Of a DNA stretch of 10,698 nt, positions 1-10,698 are shown piece by piece. Below the pieces are notes generated by a model that had not been told where the DNA came from, made no database searches, and worked only from the letters and a program-made list of their open reading frames with translations. The stretch spans positions 1 to 10,698 of the forward strand of contig NW_021827334.1 in the NCBI RefSeq assembly GCF_006345805.1. The letters run 5' to 3'. Position numbers and translations under genes: made by a program. Each line of letters opens with the position of its first letter. The stretch's first letter is position 1. The stretch comes from Octopus sinensis (Eukaryota).

Positions 1-79
1 TCCGAAAAAAATTTTTAACGAAATTTCGGAATGCCATTTTTTTTATTATGTAAACAAAAAATAGTTAGCAGTATAATGT

Positions 80-1723
80 TTTCCACAAAGTGGCTAACCT
101 CGAAGGAAAATCCTCACCCCCGAGGTTGTGCAACCAGTCTGGTATGCCCGCCTCGCCACAAGAGATGCCAACATATTTGCAGAACACCTGGCCACTATCC
201 AGGAGGCCAATCCGGAAACGTCGCAAAACCGGGAGTCGGAGCCACTGCGCGCGCCCACTGTCGCCGGACCATCACCCGATCACCATTGCAGAGGTGACCT
301 GGCCATCCGTTCGTCAAAAGGCAACGCACCGGGCCATGACAAAATACCGATGCGATTGTTTAAGGAAGCACCCGAAGACCTACATGTGTTCCTCGCGGAT
401 CTGTTTACGGCAAGTCTCAAATGGGGCCATGTGCCGGAAAAATGGAAAATCTCAGAGGTCCGGATGATCAAAAGCCTGCGAAACCGGTGAATCTCGCTAG
501 CAGCTACCGTCCCATAAGCCTAATCCCAACTATCTCAAGGCTGATGGAGAAAATTATGGCCAAGCGCCTCGACTTCCACGCCGAAGAAAGAAAGTGCTGC
601 TCCCGCAGCAATGGGGTTTTCGCTCTGGACGTAGCTGCGGTGACTGTTTCATTACGGTACAGTCCACCATCTCGAGAGCAACGGAGTTTAAAGAAACTTT
701 ATCTCTTGTATGTCTGGACATCTCAAAGGCTTTTGACAGCGTCTGGCACAGAGACCTCCTGGAAGGATCGAACTCTGTGAGCCAACAGCGGAAGTCTTCC
801 TCTGGATGCGCTGCTTCCTCTCAAATCGCTACTCTTTTATCTCTGAGTCGGGCTTCTTCTCAGATATATATTTCGCTCCGAAGGGGGTTCCGCAGGGGTC
901 CTGTCTCAGTCCAATCTTTTTCAATTTGGTAATGAGCAGTTTCCCCACACCCTCCGATCCAGGACATCCCTACTCCTCTACGCGGACGATGTTCTCGTCT
1001 GGACACCTCGATGGACACCAATGCCTCGGAGAAACGACTTGCCGGCTACATTGAGGAGATAAAGAATTGGTGCATTGGTAAGCGACTCTCGCTGGCCATG
1101 GACAAATCTGCATATCTCCAAATTAACCCAAGAAAGTCGCAAGATCGCAAACCCGGCTCTTTGGTGGAAATTGCTCGCCCTGAGAGCATACGTTACCTGG
1201 GGCTCACAATCGACGCAAACTCGAGATACCATTTGCATTTCAAACGGAGAAAAGGGAAAGCCATCGCCGCTCTCCGACTCCTAAGAAGCATGCACTTGAA
1301 TCCAAATACCTTCCTATTTGTATACCATGCAACAATCTTGCCCAGCCTACTGTATGGTATGGAAGCTTGGTTCTACTCGAAACAATATGAGAAAATTCTG
1401 CGAAAATGCGAAAAAATACGGAGATACGCTCTAAAACTAGCCTATATGCTAAATCCATGGGAGCCTGTCCCAAGCTGGGCGGAGAGCAAGTCTCCAGAGC
1501 TACGGCAGGCCATCGAGCTTCTATCCGAACTTTTCGAAACGCTCTAAAGTAACTGACCTATTCATCGATCGTGGAGAATAGCAGGTGTCCCTGCTCATAG
1601 ACAGACAAAGCGGACGAACCATGGAAGAGCTCGAATGCCCAAAGCAATCGTCTCGTCAAAATTACTTTCCGCACTAATTTTCTGTCTCGCTCTTCTTTCT
1701 TACAATAAAATTCTTCGTTCGTT
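80..1723 (+). mobile_element. Element A, copy 1: 5'-truncated non-LTR retrotransposon (Jockey/I/CR1-like RT) inserted at the H2A start codon
   Basis: RT motifs, AATAAA at 1704-1709, short TTC/TTCG tail. Flanked by CAG--TATAATGT (69-79, 2-nt deletion) and CAGAGTATAATGT (1724-1736). Confidence 0.88.
90..1581 (+). pseudogene. Reverse transcriptase of element A, copy 1 (frameshifted as read; no endonuclease domain)
   Basis: Segments in different frames: KGNAPGHDKIP, SYRPISLIPTISRLMEK, QWGFRSGRS, LDISKAFDSVWH, GVPQGSCLSP, RYLGLTID, ILPSLLYGMEAW. These are canonical non-LTR RT motifs. Confidence 0.92.
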
Positions 1724-1732
1724 CAGAGTATA

Positions 1733-2107
1733 ATGTCTTCAAGAGGAAAAGGAGGAAAAGTACGGTCAAAGGCTAAAAGCAAATCCGTTCGGGCCGGGTT
1801 ACAGTTTCCAGTTGGACGCATTCACCGGTGTCTCCGTCATGAAACCCGAATGCGAGTAGGAATTCTGCCGCAGTAATATGTGCGCAGTATTGGAATATGC
1901 TGTGGCTGAAATGCTTGAACTTGCTGGAAATACAGCAGTAAAATGTGGAAAAAGAAGAATTAAACCCGTCACATTGTCGTTGCAATTGGAAATGACGACG
2001 AATTAAAGAATTAACTCAGAAAGCTATTATTTCATCTGGTGGATTTATGATTCGCAAAACTGCAGAAACTCCTAAAACAACTTCCTAACTTTAAATTAAT
2101 TATTTGA
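1733..2107 (+). CDS. H2A: Histone H2A (divergent), copy 1; several indels probably sequencing error
   Basis: Nearly identical to the open copy at 7513-7890 ([39 protein letters not shown]). Confidence 0.88.
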
Positions 2108-2201
2108 ATAATGCGCTGTTATTTTGTAATATTGTTTTCGAAATACAATAGATCAACCAGTTAAGTTTTTTTAACGAATTTCAAAATAATTTCAAACACA
2201 A

Positions 2202-3330
2202 TTAACGAATATTGTATAGGGTGGAGTTCTTGATTTTCTTTGGCCAGTTGATGCCAATAAGAATTCTTAACTGTCTTCTATGGAATGCATCAAGAGATTT
2301 TGATTCAGACTCAGATATTCCCCATGTTCCTCCGTTGTACAAAAGTATGGGTTTAATAAAAGCATTGTATAATTTGGCACGTAAGGCCGTTCCAACCTCG
2401 CGGTTTCGTAGCCAAGTGTCCGCAGTTTGTTAAGTGCAACAGTCGATAGCATCTTTCTCCTCATAATGTCTTCACTATCTCCTAAAAGAGTTCCCACTTT
2501 TTTCGAGTTTCGCCATTTTTCGTCTGTTCTATTTGCCCCCGGTTGATTGTTACATATTCGGTTTTGTCTATGTTCACTTTTAAGAACCATTTTTCCAGTG
2601 CCTGAGGAGCAATGTTCAGCGTTCTTCGAGAGTCGACTTATCATGAGACAAAAGTCTACATCGTCGGCATATATCACTTCAGTTATTGAAGTAGACTTCA
2701 CTAGTTTTCTCAGATCTCTTAGTGCCGCTTCAAGATAGACAATGAATAGTACAGGTGATATTGAATCACCTTGGGGCGTTCCAATGCTTGTTTTGAAAGA
2801 TCTTGATTGTACGGTCCGATCTTCACCGTTAACTCGGTGTCTATAAGTAGTGCTCGAACCATTCTGATCGAGTCATTGTCAAGAATAGTTTTGAGGATCT
2901 CCATTAGCTTGTCTCTGCGGATTGTATCAAATGCCCTGCTCATATCAATGCCCAATATTGTGGTCGCCATTTTAAATTTCTGAGATATGGCACAGATCCA
3001 TCTATGTCCCCATACTACATCTGCAGTTGATCGCCCAGCCTGAATCCACTTTGGCTAGCCGACAGATATTCATTAACAGGGTCCTTAATACGTTCCAGTG
3101 TTACGAGCGAGAAGATTTTCCTTATGTGTTCAAGAGTATGATTGGGCGAATGTTGTTAAGAGGACCTTGCGGCTTGTTGGTTTTTGGAGAGGAATTAGCG
3201 TTCCTTTCCCATAGGCGGTATGGTATTTCCATGGAACATCTCGTTCAGGAGATTTGTGATTATATTGAGATCTCCATGGGGAGTACTTTATCAATTCACC
3301 GTTGATGTTGTCTGGACCCGCCGCACGGTT
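2202..3330 (-). pseudogene. Reverse transcriptase of element B, copy 1 (RTE-like; frameshifted as read)
   Basis: NRAAGPDNINGELIKY, GIDMSRAFDTIRR, YADDVDF, KKVGTLLGDSEDIMRRK. Ends at TLYNIR-stop. Confidence 0.9.
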
Positions 3331-3789
3331 GGGTACTCCCGCTGTATGTGTCCTAAAAGGTCATTATCCTCGAAGTCCCGGGGGACCCCAGAGGAGCAGG
3401 ACTCTTACCTGCCTTACCTTTTGTTCAATCCTGACAAGCCGATGCATGCCAGGACCGAACGGGCTGGACTTCTCCAGCTCTCCTTTAAAGCTGAAGAAGT
3501 CCTCCTCCTTCTCCCACCCAAGCAGAATTGGGTGGGCTCCCTCTTCAGGACTCTATACAAGCTTTGAAGGCTGGATAGAGTCTAACGTACCTAAGATCTT
3601 TATGACCGAGGCCTTCCCACTTGTAGGAGGACCTCAAGTCGTGCCACAGCACCGAAGGTAATTCTGCCCCCGGCGCCAGTGGTCTTCTTTGGGTGTGCAT
3701 CCACCTGATCGGACACACACCCAGTACCTAAAACATTAGGGGGGGTTGGACGGCCAGCCGCACGTTTGGGTTTCCCCACCGTGTACCAA
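3291..3789 (-). pseudogene. ORF1/gag-like segment of element B, copy 1 (frameshifted as read)
   Basis: Counterpart of the open frame 9084-9581 in copy 2. Confidence 0.4.
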
Positions 3790-4238
3790 CCGTCCTCAAG
3801 GGCAACCTATTTCCTGCCTGCCGTACCCACCGGGACGGCCTCAGGAGACGACACCCTGTTGGCATTAATTGACTTACCCTAGGCTGGTTTGGCACCACTA
3901 GACAAACCGCAAACACGTGGCGAACCAGCATGCTGTGCGGTTGTCGTGGCTACCAACAATTAGTACCTGTTGCAGCTGCTGCTCCCCCGACACCAGCCAA
4001 GGGGGAGCAGAGGAGAAGAGTCTTCAGTGAGTGCTGAACCCATCTGGGAGGGTCCAGGCTTCGACCCCTTCCTGCTTTGACCTAAAGAATTAAAAACACC
4101 ACTAGAATAGCCGGAAGCACGTGGCGGTGAACCACGGCTCCGGCAGTTCATCGTAGTGGCACACTGAACCGTCTTGTCCTCCGGGGAGTGCGAAGCGGGA
4201 ACGCCTCCACTTCTGCATAGTCTTCTTAGTGCAGACAG
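3790..4238 (-). other. GC-rich structured leader of element B, copy 1
   Basis: Lies between H3 codon K27 and the ORF1-like segment, with no ORF conserved between copies. Hairpins at 3893-3950, 3979-4010 (perfect 10-bp stem CTGCTCCCCC/GGGGGAGCAG) and 4097-4160. Confidence 0.6.
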
Positions 4239-4322
4239 CTTGCGAGCAGATTTTGCAGACAACTGTTTCCTTGGTACTTTTGCACCAGTAGATTTTCGAG
4301 CCGTTTGTTTTGTTCTAGCCAT
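4239..4322 (-). pseudogene. H3: Histone H3 N-terminal tail fragment (Met to K27), copy 1; histone fold absent
   Basis: [28 protein letters not shown], after which homology is lost (LSA may be the last H3-derived residues). No H3 core sequence occurs anywhere in the unit. Confidence 0.93.
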
Positions 4323-4328
4323 ATTTTA

Positions 4329-4623
4329 TTATTTTTTTTTTTCAGTCTGTATTTCACGTGAGGTAATGGTAGCCTTCGAATTCTGATAGACTAAATTTGA
4401 AGCCTCGGTTTTTATTTTGTCATAAACATCGAATGTAAAACTGTCCATAGCCATCATAGCCTTCTTTGACATCCCAAGTTGATTATGTACTGTCTTTAAA
4501 ATTTTCATAAGATATATCGAAAAAGTTTTCCTTTTCTTTTTTTTTTTTCTTTGTAGCGACGGAAACATTTTTTGTTTTAATGGGAGCTCTTTTTTGTCCT
4601 TTTGTGCTAACTTTAGGTGCCAT
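4329..4623 (-). pseudogene. H2B: Histone H2B, C-terminally truncated, copy 1
   Basis: MAPKVSTKG...KRKTFSIYLMKILKTVHNQLGMSKKAMMAMDSFTFDVYDKIKTEASNLVYQNSKATITSREIQT, then an A-run and stop. The segment equivalent to AVRLLLPGELAKHAVSEG is missing. One frameshift lies in the lysine A-run. Confidence 0.9.
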
Positions 4624-4659
4624 TATTAACAAAATTTGTATGTTCCGAGGGGAAAAACA

Positions 4660-4731
4660 TTATATAATAAAAAAAGTATTATTCCAAAATTTTTTTTGAG
4701 TAATGCAAAAAAGTATCATTCCGAATTTTTT
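4660..4731 (-). promoter_or_regulatory. H2B promoter: TATA-like element plus two copies of a shared histone upstream motif
   Basis: TATATAA on the minus strand at 4660-4666, about 40 bp from the ATG. On the + strand, AAAAAAGTATTATTCCAAAATTTT and AAAAAAGTATCATTCCGAATTTT lie 37 bp apart. Confidence 0.55.
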
Positions 4732-5021
4732 GAGAGGAATAATTTGTAATAGTAGATAATTAAAATATTTCTTAATAAAATAAAACAATAAAGTAAAACG
4801 AGAAAGTTATAAATTAGTTAATGTCATGAGGAAATTATTATTATAATACATTCCGTAGGAACATTAACAAAGTTATAATCCGACACGTGTCACAAGCAAA
4901 ACAATCTTCTGTTCCTTGCTCGTCCATGCCCCTCTGTTGCGGGCGAAATCCCGCAAAGATTTTAGGTCGTCCCAGTTTTTGAAACTTTTGCCATGAAGTT
5001 TGAGATCCCTTTCAAGAACTG

Positions 5022-5116
5022 TGTGTGATGACATGGGATGAACTGGTCACCAAATACCACAAGCGGTACTTAAGACAGTTGGATGTAGATAGTCTCTACA
5101 GGCTTATATACAGTCA
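5022..5116 (+). mobile_element. Probable remnant of the C-terminus of an R4/Dong-like (restriction-like endonuclease) non-LTR retrotransposon
   Basis: CVMTWDELVTKYHKRYLRQLDVDS, then one frameshift to LQAYIQS. This resembles the recalled C-terminal motif PYVMTWDGxVTxYHxxYLxxxGxxxxIEAYIQS. It lies in a GC-richer island (~4880-5250) within AT-rich spacer. Confidence 0.5.
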
Positions 5117-5373
5117 GCCCTTTCCTGACGTTTAGTCAGCAAGAGGCGCTAGACTGCACCTTCTCGAAGGTCTACAGTGCCAGAGAAGAAAAGGAAGAAA
5201 AAGAGGAGGTTCGTGGAGTGCCACCTTCTGCTCACTTCGAAGGCTCTGGACTTAGTAAAATACTTAGTTTCTTTTTTTAATAAAGCTAGTTAGTATATTT
5301 ATGAAATTGCTAATTTTTATCTGGTAAATTTGTAAGGAATATCAATGTATTTTATTAAAAAAATTATGTATAT

Positions 5374-5685
5374 TTATCCACCAAATCCGTAAATTGTCCT
5401 ACCTTGACGTTTCAAGGCATTAACAACGTCCATTGCGATAACAGTTTTTCTTTTGGCATGCTCAGTGTAAGAAATACAATCACGAACAGTTTGCTCAATA
5501 AAAATCTTAAGGACAGAACGTGTCTCCTCGTAAATTTTTCCAGAAATTCTTCGAACACACCCCCCTCTTCGACATAGTCTTCTTATTGCTGGCTTAGTAA
5601 TTCCTTGTATATTGTCAATTAATATCTTTCGAAATCGTTTTGCACCACTCTTTCCTCCTTTGCCACCTTTACCACGTCCAGACAT
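5374..5685 (-). CDS. H4: Histone H4 (divergent, full length, 103 aa)
   Basis: [10 protein letters not shown]...[14 protein letters not shown]...[11 protein letters not shown]...[27 protein letters not shown]. An AATAAA lies shortly after the stop on the minus strand. Confidence 0.97.
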
Positions 5686-5722
5686 TAGGAAAAATTCTCT
5701 AAATAAACACTATTTTCAACCT

Positions 5723-5820
5723 ATGCAAAAAAAGTATCATTGCCAAATTTTTTTCGACTGATGCAAAAAAGGACCATTCCGAAAAAAATTTTTAACGAAA
5801 TTTCGGAATGCCATTTTTTT
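5723..5820. promoter_or_regulatory. Divergent H4/H2A promoter with three copies of the shared motif, one inverted
   Basis: ATGCAAAAAAAGTATCATTGCCAAATTT (from 5723), ATGCAAAAAAGGACCATTCCGAAA (from 5761) and inverted AAATTTCGGAATGCCATTTTTTT (5798-5820). Perfect 10-bp inverted repeat CATTCCGAAA (5775-5784) / TTTCGGAATG (5801-5810). Confidence 0.6.
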
Positions 5821-5844
5821 ATTATGTAAACAAAAAATAGTTAG

Positions 5845-5857
5845 CAGAGTATAATGT
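5845..5857 (+). repeat. Left target-site duplication of element A (CAGAGTATAATGT, includes the H2A ATG)
   Basis: Exact 13-nt match to 7504-7516. Confidence 0.88.
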
Positions 5858-7503
5858 TTTCCACAAAGTGGCTAACCTCGAAGGAAAATCCTCACCCCCG
5901 AGGTTGTGCAACCAGTCTGGTATGCCCGCCTCGCCACAAGAGATGCCAAACATATTTGCAGAACACCTGGCCACTATCCAGGAGGCCAATCCGGAAACGT
6001 CGCAAAAACGGGAGTCGGAGCCACTGCCGCGCCACTGTCGCCGGACCATCACCCGATCACCATTGCAGAGGTGACCTGGGCCATCCGTTCGTCAAAAGGC
6101 AACGCACCGGGCCATGACAAAATACCGATGCGATTGTTTAAGGAAGCACCCGAAGACCTACATGTGTTCCTCGCGGATCTGTTTACGGCAAGTCTCAAAT
6201 GGGGCCATGTGCCGGAAAAATGGAAAATCTCAGAGGTCCGGATGATCAAAAGCCTGCGAAACCGGTGAATCTCGCTAGCAGCTACCGTCCCATAAGCCTA
6301 ATCCCAACTATCTCAAGGCTGATGGAGAAAATTATGGCCAAGCGCCTCGACTTCCACGCCGAAGAGAAGAAAGTGCTGCTCCCGCAGCAATGGGGTTTTC
6401 GCTCTGGACGTAGCTGCGGTGACTGTTTCATTACGGTACAGTCCACCATCTCGAGAGCAACGGAGTTTAAAGAAACTTTATCTCTTGTATGTCTGGACAT
6501 CTCAAAGGCTTTTGACAGCGTCTGGCACAGAGACCTCCTGGAAAGGATCGAACTCTGTGAGCCAACAGCGGAAGTCTTCCTCTGGATGCGCTGCTTCCCT
6601 CTCAAATCGCTACTCTTTTATCTCTGAGTCGGGCTTCTTCTCAAGATATTTCGCTCCGAAGGGGGTTCCGCAGGGGTCCTGTCTCAGTCCAATCTTTTTC
6701 AATTTGGTAATGAGCAGTTTCCCCACACCCTCCGATCCCAGGACATCCCTACTCCTCTACGCGGACGATGTTCTCGTTCTGGACACCTCGATGGACACCA
6801 ATGCCTCGGAGAAACGACTTGCCGGCTACATTGAGGAGATAAAGAATTGGTGCATTGGTAGCGACTCTCGCTGGCCATGGACAAATCTGCATATCTCCAA
6901 ATTAACCCAAGAAAGTCGCAAGATCGCAAACCCGGCTCTTTGGTGGAAATTGCTCGCCCTGAGAGCATACGTTACCTGGGGCTCACAATCGACGCAAACT
7001 CGAGATACCATTTGCATTTCAAACGGAGAAAAGGGAAAGCCATCGCCGCTCTCCGACTCCTAAGAAGCATGCACTTGAATCCAATACCTTCCTATTTGTA
7101 TACCATGCAACAATCTTGCCCAGCCTACTGTATGGTATGGAAGCTTGGTTCTACTCGAAACAATATGAGAAAATTCTGCGAAAATGCGAAAAAATACGGA
7201 GATACGCTCTAAAACTAGCCTATATGCTAAATCCATGGGAGCCTGTCCCAAGCTGGGCGGAGAGCAAGTCTCCAGAGCTACGGCAGGCCATCGAGGCTTC
7301 TATCCGAACTTTTCGGAAACGCTCTAAAGTAACTGACCTATTCATCGATCGTGGAGAATAGCAGGTGTCCCTGCTCATAGACAGACAAAGCGGACGAACC
7401 ATGGAAGAGCTCGAATGCCCAAAGCAATCGTCTCGTCAAAATTACTTTCCGCACTAATTTTCTGTCTCGCTCTTCTTTCTTACAATAAAATTCTTCGTTC
7501 GTT
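5858..7503 (+). mobile_element. Element A, copy 2: 5'-truncated non-LTR retrotransposon at the H2A start codon
   Basis: RT motifs, AATAAA at 7484-7489, TTCTTCGTTCGTT tail, exact 13-bp flanking duplication. Confidence 0.9.
5868..7361 (+). pseudogene. Reverse transcriptase of element A, copy 2 (frameshifted as read)
   Basis: SYRPISL, QQWGFRSGRS, LDISKAFDSVWH, GVPQGSCLSP, LLLYADD, RYLGLTID. Ends at DLFIDRGE-stop. Confidence 0.92.
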
Positions 7504-7516
7504 CAGAGTATAATGT
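7504..7516 (+). repeat. Right target-site duplication of element A
   Basis: CAGAGTATAATGT, whose ATG (7513) opens the H2A ORF. Confidence 0.88.
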
Positions 7517-7890
7517 CTTCAAGAGGAAAAGGAGGAAAAGTACGGTCAAAGGCTAAAAGCAAATCCGTTCGGGCCGGGTTACAGTTTCCAGTTGGACGCA
7601 TTCACCGGTGTCTCCGTCATGAAACCCGAATGCGAGTAGGAATTCCTGCCGCAGTATATATGTGCGCAGTATTGGAATATGCTGTGGCTGAAATGCTTGA
7701 ACTTGCTGGAAATACAGCAGTAAAATGTGGAAAAAGAAGAATTAAACCACGTCACATTGTCGTTGCAATTGGAAATGACGACGAATTAAAAGAATTAACT
7801 CAGAAAGCTATTATTTCATCTGGTGGATTTATGATTCGCAAAACTGCAGAACTCCTAAAACAACTTCCTAACTTTAAATTAATTATTTGA
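7513..7890 (+). CDS. H2A: Histone H2A (divergent, open, 125 aa), copy 2
   Basis: [58 protein letters not shown]. The acidic-patch residues are retained. Confidence 0.96.
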
Positions 7891-7983
7891 ATAATGCGCT
7901 GTTTTTTGTAATATTGTTTTCGAAATACAATAGATCAACCAGTTAAGTTTTTTTAACGAATTTCAAAATAATTTCAAACACAA

Positions 7984-9123
7984 TTAACGAATATTGTATA
8001 GGGTGGAGTTCTTGATTTTCTTTGGCCAGTTGATGCCAATAAGAATTCTTAACTGTCTTCTATGGAATGCATCAAGAGATTTTGATTCAGACTCAGATAT
8101 TCCCCATGTTCCTCCGTTGTACAAAAGTATGGGTTTAATAAAAGCATTGTATAATTTGGCACGTAAGGCCGTTCCAACCTCGCGGTTTCGTAGCCAAGTG
8201 GTCCGCAGTTTGTTAAGTGCAACAGTCGATAGCATCTTTCTCCTCATAATGTCTTCACTATCTCCTAAAAGAGTTCCAACTTTTTTCGAGTTTCGCCCTT
8301 TTTCGTCTGTTCTATTTGCCTCCCGGTTGATTGTTACATATTCGGTTTTTTCTATGTTCACTTTTAAGAACCATTTTTCCAGTGCCTGAGGAGCAATGTT
8401 CAGCAGTTCTTCGAGAGTCGACTTATCATGAGACAAAAAGTCTACATCGTCGGCATATATCACTTCAGTTATTGAAGTAGACTTCACTAGTTTTCTCAGA
8501 TCTCTTAGTGCCGCTTCAAGATAGACAATGAATAGTACAGGTGATATTGAATCACCTTGGGGCGTTCCAATGCTTGTTTTGAAAGATCTTGATTGTACGG
8601 GTCCGATCTTCACCGTTAACTCGGTGTCTATAAGTAGTGCTCGAACCATTCTGATCGAGTCATTGTCAAGAATAGTTTTTGAGGATCTCCATTAGCTTGT
8701 CTCTGCGGATTGTATCAAATGCCCTGCTCATATCAATGCCCAATATTGTGGTCGCCATTTTAAATTTCTGAGATATGGCACAGATCCATCTATGTCCCCA
8801 TACTAATCTGCAGTTGATCGCCCAGGCCTGAATCCACTTTGGCTAGCCGACAGATATTCATTAACAGGGTCCTTAATACGTTCCAGTGTTACGAGCGAGA
8901 AGATTTTCCTTATTGTGTTCAAGAGTATGATTGGGCGAATGTTGTTAAGAGGACCTTGCGGCTTGTTGGGTTTTTGGAGAGGAATTAGCGTTCCTTTCCC
9001 AATAGGCGGTATGGTATTTCCATGGAACATCTCGTTCAGGAGATTTGTGATTATAGTTGAGATCTCCATTGGGGAGTACTTTATCAATTCACCGTTGATG
9101 TTGTCTGGACCCGCCGCACGGTT
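7984..9123 (-). pseudogene. Reverse transcriptase of element B, copy 2 (RTE-like; indels as read)
   Basis: NRAAGPDNINGELIKYSP, NIRPIILLNTIRKIF, SQSGFRPGRSTAD, GTPQGDSISPVLF, YADDVDF, IKPILLYNGGTWG, AFHRRQLRILIGINWP. Confidence 0.92.
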
Positions 9124-9581
9124 GGGTACTCCCGCTGTATGTGTCCTAAAAGGTCATTATCCTCGAAGTCCCGGGGGACCCCGAGGAGCAGGACTCTTAC
9201 CTGCCTTACCTTTTGTTCAATCCTGACAAGCCGATGCATGCCAGGACCGAACGGGCTGGACTTCTCCAGCTCTCCTTTAAAGCTGAAGAAGTCCTCCTCC
9301 TTCTCCCACCCAAGCAGGAATTGGGTGGGCTCCCTCTTCAGGACTCTATACAGCTTTGAAGGCTGGATAGAGTCTAACGTACCTAAGATCTTTATGACCG
9401 AGGCCTTCCCACTTGTAGGGAGGACCTCAAGTCGTGCCACAGCACCGAAGGTAATTCTGCCCCCGGCGCCAGTGGTCTTCTTTGGGTGTGCATCCACCTG
9501 ATCGGACACACACCCAGTACCTAAAACATTAGGGGGGTTGGACGGCCAGCCGCACGTTTGGGTTTCCCCACCGTGTACCAA
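9084..9581 (-). CDS. ORF1/gag-like open frame of element B, copy 2
   Basis: Open 165-codon frame with a non-ATG start. KVRQVRVLLLGVPRDFEDNDLLGHIQREYPTVRRVQ resembles the RRM-like portion of non-LTR ORF1 proteins (pattern recognition only). Confidence 0.45.
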   Translation of the reverse strand: MVHGGETQTCGWPSNPPNVLGTGCVSDQVDAHPKKTTGAGGRITFGAVARLEVLPTSGKASVIKILGTLDSIQPSKLYRVLKREPTQFLLGWEKEEDFFSFKGELEKSSPFGPGMHRLVRIEQKVRQVRVLLLGVPRDFEDNDLLGHIQREYPTVRRVQTTSTVN

Positions 9582-10029
9582 CCGTCCTCAAGGGCAACCT
9601 TATTTCCTGCCGTACCCACCGGACGGCCTCAGGAGACGACACCCTGTTGGCATTAATTGACTTACCTAGGCTGGGTTTGGCACCACTAGACAAACCGCAA
9701 ACACGTGGCGAACCAGCATGCTGTGCGGTTGTCGTGGCTACCAAACGATCAGAACGTTGCACCTGCAGCTCCCCCGACACCAGCCATAGGGGGAGCAGAG
9801 GAAAAGTGTCTCCAGTGAGTGCTGAACCCACCTGGGAGGGTCCAGGCTTCGACTTCTCCTCCTGCTTTCGCCTAGAAAATTAAAGACACCACTAGAATAG
9901 CCGGAAGCGCGTGGCGGTGAACCACGGCTCCGGCAATTCAATCGTAGTGGCACACTGAACCGTCTTGTCCTTCTGGGAGAGCGAGGCGGGAAGCACCTCC
10001 ACTTCTGCATAGTCTTCTTGTGCAGACAG
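9582..10029 (-). other. GC-rich structured leader of element B, copy 2 (divergent variant)
   Basis: Counterpart of 3790-4238, with hairpins at 9681-9738 and 9887-9951. Confidence 0.6.
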
Positions 10030-10113
10030 CTTGCGAGCAGATTTTGCAGACAACTGTTTCCTTGGTACTTTTGCACCAGTAGATTTTCGAGCCGTTTGTT
10101 TGTTTCTAGCCAT
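10030..10113 (-). pseudogene. H3: Histone H3 N-terminal tail fragment, copy 2
   Basis: MAR(N)[24 protein letters not shown], with the same junction as copy 1. Confidence 0.92.
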
Positions 10114-10119
10114 ATTTTA

Positions 10120-10409
10120 TTATTTTTTTTTTTCAGTCTGTATTCACGTGAGGTAATGGTAGCCTTCGAATTCTGATAGACTAAATTTGAAGCCTCGGTT
10201 TTTATTTTGTCATAAACATCGAATGTAAAACTGTCCATAGCCATCATAGCCTTCTTTGACATCCCAAGTTGATTATGTACTGTCTTTAAAATTTTCATAA
10301 GATATATCGAAAAAGTTTTCCTTTTCTTTTTTTTCTTTGTAGCGACGGAAACATTTTTTGTTTTAATGGGAGCTCTTTTTTGTCCTTTTGTGCTAACTTT
10401 AGGTGCCAT
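10120..10409 (-). pseudogene. H2B: Histone H2B, C-terminally truncated, copy 2
   Basis: Open from MAPKVSTK to ATITSRE, then joined to the same A-run and H3 ATG as copy 1. Confidence 0.9.
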
Positions 10410-10443
10410 TATTAACAAAATTTGTATGTTCCGGGGGAAAAAA

Positions 10444-10517
10444 CATTATATAATAAAAAAAGTATTATTCCAAAATTTTTTTTGAGTAATGCAAAAAAGT
10501 ATCATTCCGAATTTTTT
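10444..10517 (-). promoter_or_regulatory. H2B promoter, copy 2 (TATA-like element plus paired motif)
   Basis: Same sequence as 4660-4731. Confidence 0.55.
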
Positions 10518-10698
10518 GAGAGGAATAATTTGTAATAGTAGATAATTAAAATATTTCTTAATAAAATAAAACAATAAAGTAAAACGAGAAAGTTATAAAT
10601 TAGTTAATGTCATGAGGAAATTATTATTATAATACATTCCGTAGGAACATTAACAAAGTTATAATCCGACACGTGTCACAATCAAAACAATCTTCTGT

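Follow-up and report, generated by a model that had tools for sequence, protein, structure and literature searches.

LINE insertions at histone leader starts in a variant core-histone array of Octopus sinensis

Why does a tandemly repeated histone unit of an octopus carry retroelement DNA at several positions, and were these positions chosen by the elements? This question was raised by a 10,698-bp stretch of Octopus sinensis DNA, which is the entire contig VCDQ01009424.1 of assembly GCA_006345805.1 (hereafter the window). A preliminary description had proposed that the histone array might be a niche for target-specific retroelements, or that a damaged unit had simply been amplified by unequal crossing-over. 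Self-alignment, tblastn and Pfam confirmed the ~5.78-kb tandem histone unit with its retroelement DNA. We found that a single damaged unit from a divergent ("variant") core-histone array of O. sinensis makes up the window, where it stands in two tandem copies. On balance, we favoured the reading that this array is a preferred landing place of one clade of long interspersed nuclear elements (LINEs) with an apurinic/apyrimidinic-type (APE-type) endonuclease. The clade comprises families A/E, D and D2, and the 5' end of the histone transcript probably determined the junction.

LINE 3' ends at the histone leader starts

The window was compared with 15 independent O. sinensis loci on 15 other contigs of 15-428 kb, which gave 16 loci in all. 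These loci were retrieved by exact-protein look-up with the variant H2A, H3 and H4 proteins and the protein of LINE D. The 90 nt upstream of every histone ATG were compared across the loci. A second catalogue was started from LINE tail motifs, not from genes; it covered families A/E, D and D2 and held 36 3' ends at the 16 loci. In this catalogue, 24 of the 36 3' ends lay no more than 70 nt upstream of the ATG of a histone gene or of a head, as we call the histone-derived sequence at the 5' end of these LINEs. At least 16 distinct combinations of tail and leader were present at the four histone genes. Most of them met at one fixed base per gene, with the LINE in gene orientation.

In the case of H2A, whose leader is only 9 nt long, the junction lay directly before CAGAGTATA-ATG. 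This base was joined to four different tails (A, E and two of D), and it followed the normal promoter in seven copies. The H4 junction lay before ATTTAGAG, that is, before ATTTAGAGAATTTTTCCTA-ATG, and was joined to the promoter, to D tails or to tails of D2, a D-like family. At H3 the base before CTGAAACTGT was joined to E or to a (TTCA)n-tailed relative. The two H2B junctions, before CGGAACATAC and before the variant CAAAACTTGC, were joined to A or D. The junction contexts were TTAG/CAGAG, GTTT/ATTTAG, CCCT/CGGAAC and TAGC/CTGAAAC (slash, junction), and no common motif was found in them on either strand. A rough binomial estimate was made for the first six loci only, where 13 of 19 ends lay at histone or head start positions. 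It gave a chance probability of ~5e-36, or ~6e-25 once likely duplicates were collapsed.

The LINE 3' ends showed a constant AATAAA followed by a short tail, which was ttcgttcgtt in A and (ttcca)n in E. D had many 5' truncation points, its tail lengths varied at the junction, and a twin-priming-type inversion was present at locus L007. The preliminary description had placed a retroelement at the H2A start codon, and this was borne out. In the window, A was bounded by the 13-bp target-site duplication (TSD) CAGAGTATAATGT, which starts at the H2A leader and holds the ATG. H2A was cut off from the H4-H2A promoter, and empty sites were present elsewhere. A second A copy (L004) had a different 5' truncation and the 17-bp TSD CGGAACATACAAATTTT. 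This TSD begins precisely at the H2B leader, and the H2B promoter lies upstream of it. Left-hand TSD copies were also sought for the other leader-start insertions, and they were found for these two A copies only. The 3' end of A read AATAAA and then attcttcgttcgtt, with no poly(A). The window copies of A were 5'-truncated, without the endonuclease part, and the Pfam family RVT_1 matched their pieces at E 4.5e-16 and 9e-10. Long direct or inverted terminal repeats (LTRs) were absent from the window. The features of a non-LTR retrotransposon were present together, namely TSDs of 13 and 17 bp, variable 5' truncation, a defined 3' end and no LTRs.

Empty and occupied sites coexisted in the array. 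The preliminary description had proposed a count of the two kinds; at the sampled loci, about one third of the variant histone gene copies were occupied, i.e. separated from their promoter. The H4-H2A spacer was uninterrupted and 155-161 bp long in the empty units of L005, L006, L019 and L021. We considered whether the LINE-preceded H2A copies were retrocopies or 3'-transduced modules. This was rejected because at least 700 bp of the downstream unit were common to promoter-bearing copies. The occupied H2A copies encode an intact 119-aa protein, and together with the normal downstream unit this indicated insertion in place.

Could a pattern of this kind arise with no targeting? Unequal crossing-over, gene conversion and segmental duplication could have spread and reordered a few chance insertions. 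Rearrangement was visible across the array loci, the junctions were identical in both window units, and junctions with identical flanks recurred (e.g. L002 5957 and 18192, L018 1761 and 17596). However, the same base was joined to tails of different families that differed right up to the junction (A, E and two D at H2A; E and (TTCA)n at H3; D and D2 at H4). The distinct combinations extended over four genes, the two A copies differed in truncation and TSD, and the estimate for the first six loci stayed extremely small after duplicates were collapsed. We considered chance insertion followed by amplification to be improbable. The idea of the array as a niche thus gained strong support from the 24 3' ends, the combinations, the heads and the empty sites at 15 other loci; it did not hold as exclusive, since D was also found off the array.

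An A-like tail with (TTCTG)n was observed as well, always before the same non-histone flank atttgtcattttataatattt (L002 9162, L004 1233, L007 4404, L013 345 and 17430, L020 5983). It was probably part of a larger repeated unit and not a series of independent insertions.

The damaged unit and the histone-derived heads

The unit of ~5,780 bp is a direct tandem repeat present in 1.85 copies in the window (Table 1). Positions 2-4912 aligned to 5779-10698 with 98.0% identity, 33 mismatches and 55 gap openings. The gaps were scattered 1-bp indels at a rate of ~1%, and they look like residual errors of an unpolished long-read assembly. Since such indels are likely read errors, most "frameshifts" in the histone and retroelement open reading frames (ORFs) are not to be trusted. 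Of the substitutions, 25 of 33 were confined to 3958-4203 (against 9747-9995), ~250 bp within the D 5' region. This patch may have arisen by gene conversion, or the assembly may have mixed repeat copies here; elsewhere the two units differed almost solely by 1-bp indels. The preliminary description had counted the unit at least twice, each time with H4; the repeat stood, while H4 was present only in the first unit, and the window stops before a second one. Both units had an identical TSD, A 5' truncation, H2B/head junction and B1 junctions. Each junction is thus a single event copied by tandem duplication at the DNA level, so that the proposed amplification of a damaged unit holds inside the window.

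The indels also bear on whether the junctions are real. Chimeric long reads or collapsed repeats could make false LINE/histone junctions, and the window is a short unplaced contig with a ~1% 1-bp indel rate and a substitution-rich patch that could be mixed repeat copies. On the other hand, the same junctions, TSDs and heads were present in independent contigs of 15-428 kb, and the TSDs and empty sites were internally consistent. An assembly artefact was, in our judgement, hardly credible.

Table 1. Positions of histone and retroelement features in the two units of the window
Feature	Position	Strand	Remark
Left TSD of A, unit 1	69-79	plus	CAGTATAATGT; 2 nt shorter than in unit 2, probably a read error
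Element A, unit 1	80-1723	plus	5'-truncated APE-type LINE; reverse transcriptase (RT) domain and ORF2 C-terminus
Right TSD of A, unit 1	1724-1736	plus	9-nt H2A leader, ATG and T
Variant H2A, unit 1	1733-2107	plus	reads as frameshifted by several 1-bp indels
B1, unit 1	2212-3330	minus	RT fragment of a LINE other than A/D
D 5' end (nt 1-987), unit 1	3331-4322	minus	H3 piece, H4-like 33 nt and a GC-rich stretch; corresponds to full-length D
H4-like 11 codons of D head, unit 1	4200-4232	minus	33 nt; followed by the N-terminal part of ORF1
H3-derived part of D head, unit 1	4239-4322	minus	partial 5' untranslated region (5'UTR) and codons 1-30
Variant H2B, unit 1	4344-4623	minus	promoter intact; ends after ...SREIQT; ~30 C-terminal residues lost
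Segment C	4881-5240 (approx.)	minus	GC-richer block in the H4-H2B spacer, common to other units
Variant H4	5374-5685	minus	intact 103-aa ORF, ~80% identical to canonical H4; AATAAA after the stop
Divergent H4-H2A promoter	5686-5844	no strand	TTCGGAATG motif and TATA-like box
Left TSD of A, unit 2	5845-5857	plus	CAGAGTATAATGT
Element A, unit 2	5858-7503	plus	truncation point and tail as in unit 1
Right TSD of A, unit 2	7504-7516	plus	CAGAGTATAATGT, includes ATG
Variant H2A, unit 2	7513-7890	plus	open 125-aa ORF; C-terminus differs from that of the 119-aa protein P0001 owing to one 1-bp deletion
B1, unit 2	7994-9123	minus	RT fragment
D 5' end with H3-derived head, unit 2	9124-10113	minus	H3 codons 1-30 at 10030-10113
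Truncated variant H2B, unit 2	10143-10409 (approx.)	minus	ends after ...SREIQT

The preliminary description had also placed retroelement sequence inside H3. This was not the case. In the full-length reference copy of D (L006 5448-9990), ORF1 is gag-like and has CCHC knuckles, while ORF2 encodes APE endonuclease and RT. The first 120 nt of D consist of a partial H3 5'UTR with codons 1-30, followed by 11 codons like residues 34-44 of variant H4. A full-length D at L012, 98% identical, carried the same H3 head with no histone gene within 10 kb. The reading frame of this copy began at the H3 ATG and stayed open over 362 ORF1 residues. By tblastn, no H3 coding sequence beyond codons 1-30 was found anywhere in the window unit. 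Because D has the same head at a non-histone locus, the H3 piece in the window is best regarded as the histone-derived head of the element and not as a disrupted H3 gene. The gene broken there is H2B, and its break point showed CTG microhomology with the H3 leader of D.

The block beside the H3 piece combined parts of two LINEs that are not related to each other, namely the D 5' end and B1. The B1 protein was 24-26% identical to A and D and matched RVT_1 at E 2.5e-15. B1 was truncated at both ends: its ORF stays open into the H2A 3' flank, 127 nt past the H2A stop, and ~40 C-terminal residues and the 3'UTR are missing. No relatives of B1 were found at the other histone loci. In the case of segment C, a probable retroelement in the H4-H2B spacer had been proposed, and this could not be confirmed. 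Segment C gave no Pfam match and no significant match among 164 LINE ORF2 proteins, and we dropped the label. At L019 (596 and 13707), a relative of segment C ended internally and was joined directly to the first H3-leader base. The leader start thus also joins sequence without a recognisable LINE tail.

These observations could be arranged into a history of the unit, the order of which is our reconstruction. First, a family A LINE would have inserted by target-primed reverse transcription (TPRT) at the first base of the H2A leader, leaving the 13-bp TSD and parting H2A from the shared promoter. A family D LINE, with a head presumably copied from H3 and H4 messenger RNA, would then have joined the H2B coding region via its 5' end. 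Insertion of the third LINE, B1, and a deletion may have removed the remainder of D. Finally, the wrecked unit would have been duplicated at the DNA level.

Heads were not restricted to this copy of D. Those of D were of an H3 type or an H4 type, the latter consisting of the leader and codons 1-54 in frame with a 516-aa ORF1. The E head was H2B-like, with KVPRKQLS (H3-like) and IRNLCRSG (H4-like) after it, and a 473-aa ORF1 continued in the same frame. The diverged head sequence KVPRKQLS...IRNLCRSG was common to LINE families that are only ~35% identical. A recurrent breakpoint was observed inside H3 at codons ~15-18 (KVPRKQLS), at L002 12320-12829 and, in many loci, at unit position ~2786. 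It coincided with the start point of the H3-like part of the E head.

The LINE proteins had the domains of APE-type elements. RVT_1 matched ORF2 of D and E up to E 6.7e-39, and Exo_endo_phos or Exo_endo_phos_2 matched D ORF2 and the E endonuclease ORF at related loci. No restriction-like endonuclease domain was found by Pfam in the LINE proteins. A/E and D were ~34% identical in ORF2 and 36% in ORF1. Since both are associated with the array in spite of this divergence, the association predates their split. The nearest database relatives of D ORF2 outside O. sinensis were arthropod ORF2s with 27-33% identity. In a set of 1.84 billion representative proteins, the identity range from 33% to 87% was empty, and the close relatives were all from O. 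sinensis. A separate protein search with D ORF2, which was swamped by candidates, gave matches of at most 43% identity only.

The histone quartet itself was identified in the window by tblastn and Pfam (Histone/CENP-T_C), and the same quartet was clustered at the other loci. Identity to canonical histones was approximately 80% for H4, 79% for H3, 58% for H2A and 54% for H2B. The genes thus lack the near-invariant H3 and H4 of replication-dependent core histone genes. No Rfam match to the histone 3' stem-loop or to any other RNA family was obtained in the window at E<=1. Together with the AATAAA after the H4 stop, this made the variant transcripts look polyadenylated rather than stem-loop processed. 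A repeated motif common to the histone promoters (window 4650-4740 and 5700-5830, and other loci) was TTCGGAATG(A/C)...; a T-run and a TATA-like box came after it.

The exact H4 protein of the window was not on record in the look-up. A 2.2-kb Vollenhovia emeryi (ant) scaffold and contigs of two unrelated sequencing runs (L008, L009, L010) contained the same divergent quartet. H4 from O. sinensis, the ant and the sequencing runs was 91-92% identical as protein and 75-78% as DNA. Protein kept while the DNA diverged suggested a conserved and presumably functional variant family. A possibly related GCTTCCG...AAAA motif was seen in the ant and Logan units. The scatter of variant histones over sporadic taxa may reflect contamination, for which a parasite or symbiont was considered, or horizontal transfer. 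Their presence in the ant scaffold and in unrelated sequencing runs would agree with contamination. In contrast, the LINEs tied the histone contigs to 200-430-kb contigs with the AT-rich composition expected for octopus. In addition, a called gene with an innexin domain (L018 17247-20411) lay ~7 kb from a variant H3 gene, which supported an animal genomic context of the arrays.

Other mobile elements were seen at these loci. DDE_1 and Tc5-type transposase ORFs were present in L018 and L020. Long ORFs of 846 and 647 aa (L006 16363-18900, minus strand, and L004 15120-17060) combined an N-terminal PHD-like finger with an RT domain, and no endonuclease domain was detected in these two ORFs. They represent a further, different retroelement type.

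A probable role of the transcript end, and a tethered nick as a possible alternative

What sets the junction base? Among the heads examined, none extended upstream of the base at which LINE tails are joined. This is the main internal evidence that the junction base corresponds to an RNA 5' end. Because the four sites had no common sequence, the junction was most likely set by the end of the histone RNA and not by DNA recognition. Three further observations favoured an RNA-end-defined junction. First, a LINE tail was joined to the first head base of the next LINE at L002 7085, L004 8855 and L007 5069. Second, at L004 8826-10001 the whole divergent H4-H2A promoter was replaced by two inverted D fragments, each with its tail exactly at a leader start; the fragments met at a cctccc/gggagg microhomology with a 14-nt duplication. 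Third, the 5' ends of the LINEs carried patchworks of short histone 5'UTR pieces.

A mechanism can be proposed on this basis; it presumes both expression from the histone promoter and an RNA-guided step. LINE copies downstream of a histone promoter would be transcribed from it. Their RNAs would start with the histone 5'UTR and N-terminal codons, which would now form the start of ORF1. In the route that we prefer, RT would extend the nicked template strand along a histone RNA to its 5' end and would then jump end-to-end onto the 3' end of the LINE RNA. The R2 RT is reportedly capable of such end-to-end template jumping, and U6-L1 chimeras are said to result from template switching by RT. Alternatively, a nick at the boundary of an RNA-DNA hybrid (R-loop) could prime ordinary TPRT and lead to the same product. 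In its fullest form, the proposal would be a LINE clade specialised on histone units that integrates at the first transcribed base under guidance of the RNA 5' end, borrows promoter, 5'UTR and ATG, and makes an ORF1 with a histone-tail N-terminus. We regard this full form as possible and rather doubtful.

The main rival is classical TPRT in which the first nick is steered to the promoter-proximal base by a protein tether or by chromatin, with the histone RNA uninvolved. The tether could be the pre-initiation complex, TBP-bent DNA, or an open or paused complex. This would be an RNA polymerase II (Pol II) counterpart of Ty3 and the Dictyostelium TRE at RNA polymerase III (Pol III) genes. The two TSDs start at the junction base with intact promoters upstream, and the inversion in L007 is of the twin-priming type. 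The variable D tail lengths at the junction are as TPRT initiation predicts. In addition, the distance from the TATA-like boxes to the junctions downstream of them was fairly uniform, 19-25 nt. However, tail/head junctions at L002 7085 and L007 5069 are now without a promoter, and L004 would require two precise nicks and the exact loss of the intervening promoter. A tether would not explain why LINE 5' ends carry a patchwork of histone RNA pieces. We know of no precedent for base-precise LINE nicking at Pol II starts, which also counts against a tether. Taken together, we considered a tethered or chromatin-directed nick to be rather unlikely.

Several points weigh against a junction set by the transcript end and against the array as a preferred landing place. 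Some junctions were off the base: A lay at ~+15 of H3 (L021), D at ~+12 of H3 (L018), and another D 39 nt upstream of the H3 leader (L004). All three D copies that were found via the LINE protein lay in AT-rich non-histone DNA (L011-L013), one of them full-length with a head. The presence of D at non-histone sites indicated a strong preference and not a strict specificity of the R2 kind. Most loci were chosen for containing histone genes, which inflates the association and not the precision at the base level. The association was sampled at 16 loci of one error-rich assembly, and copying of a single event at the DNA level may account for several of the junctions. The distance of 19-25 nt to the TATA-like boxes is shorter than the usual ~30 nt, and the junction base is a presumed transcription start. 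Finally, TSDs of 13 and 17 bp are an ordinary LINE stagger, and a plain nick would account for them no less well than RNA-templated extension would.

Histone arrays and the known LINE habitats

Known LINE havens comprise ribosomal DNA (rDNA), spliced-leader, small nuclear RNA (snRNA) and transfer RNA genes, microsatellites, telomeres and other transposons; spliced-leader and U2 snRNA genes are among the multicopy targets (Kojima and Jurka 2015). Histone genes were absent from the published LINE target lists examined, and full-text literature searching returned no histone-targeting LINE and no O. sinensis histone/LINE array. The arrangement in the octopus resembles R1 and R2 in rDNA in several respects. 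The habitat is tandem and multicopy, a sizeable fraction of its units carries an insertion and other units are empty, precise 3' junctions go together with 5' truncation that varies between copies, and damaged units spread by unequal crossing-over. R2 is expressed from the host promoter and carries host sequence at the 5' end of its RNA. The octopus LINEs may share this promoter dependence, and their host-derived 5' sequence is comparable. In contrast to R1/R2, the targets are Pol II protein-coding histone genes with four sites of no common sequence, and the site is a presumed transcript start and not an internal conserved sequence. The octopus element is also found outside the array, and its host-derived head would be translated as the N-terminus of ORF1.

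SLACS, CZAR, CRE and NeSL-1 in spliced-leader genes and Utopia and Keno in U2 snRNA genes are similar in that they lie near the 5' end of tandem genes transcribed by Pol II. However, most of them have a restriction-like endonuclease and strict specificity, whereas the octopus LINEs have an APE endonuclease and no common target. The analogy with R1, R2, NeSL and Utopia drawn in the preliminary description failed on two counts, common target sequence and confinement (all three of the D copies found by protein lay away from histone genes). The position within the gene was precise, apart from a minority displaced by 12-40 nt.

This comparison also bears on a strictly sequence-specific LINE of the R1/R2/NeSL type, whose endonuclease would recognise histone gene sequence. 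Precise 3' junctions with variable 5' ends, occupied and empty sites in one multicopy array, and host-derived 5' sequence as in co-transcribed R2 would all suit it. The four junction sites without common sequence on either strand argue against it, and so do the APE-type endonuclease without a restriction-like domain, the D copies at unrelated AT-rich sites and the displaced junctions. We considered such an element very unlikely.

Other systems share single features with the octopus LINEs. The snRNA-derived heads of SINEU are copies of abundant cellular RNAs that extend to the RNA 5' end, and these heads can become a heritable part of the element (PMC4494074). The octopus heads are like those of SINEU and U6-L1 chimeras in coming from an abundant cellular RNA and reaching its 5' end. 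They differ in that they are carried by autonomous LINEs, derive from histone messenger RNA and supply the 5'UTR, the ATG and a histone-tail N-terminus of ORF1. In addition, octopus LINE tails join histone leader starts in situ. L1 5' and 3' transduction is similar in that a flanking promoter adds flank to the element RNA, which is copied to new sites. The L1 flank is normally a passive passenger, whereas the octopus heads are common to families ~35% identical and start the ORF1 frame. Ty3 and the Dictyostelium TRE use Pol III factors as tethers, and TRE integrates tens of bp from the gene. As in the octopus, the insertion point is set relative to the transcription unit and not by DNA sequence, but the octopus junction is the first base of Pol II histone leaders.

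The use of multicopy genes as safe havens is central to LINE biology, and histone arrays are not among the known havens. The contrast with those havens is mechanistic: lineages ~35% identical share the same base before four unrelated leaders and a histone-derived start of ORF1. The arrays illustrate how a tandem gene family is worn down and remodelled by retroelements acting together with unequal crossing-over. If the proposal is true in its fullest form, it would be the first case of retrotransposons with a habitat in histone genes, and of a LINE target choice defined by an RNA end and not by sequence. If the junction is set by the transcript 5' end, it would represent a sequence-independent, RNA-guided way of finding a site, and the array would be a natural system for template jumping in vivo.

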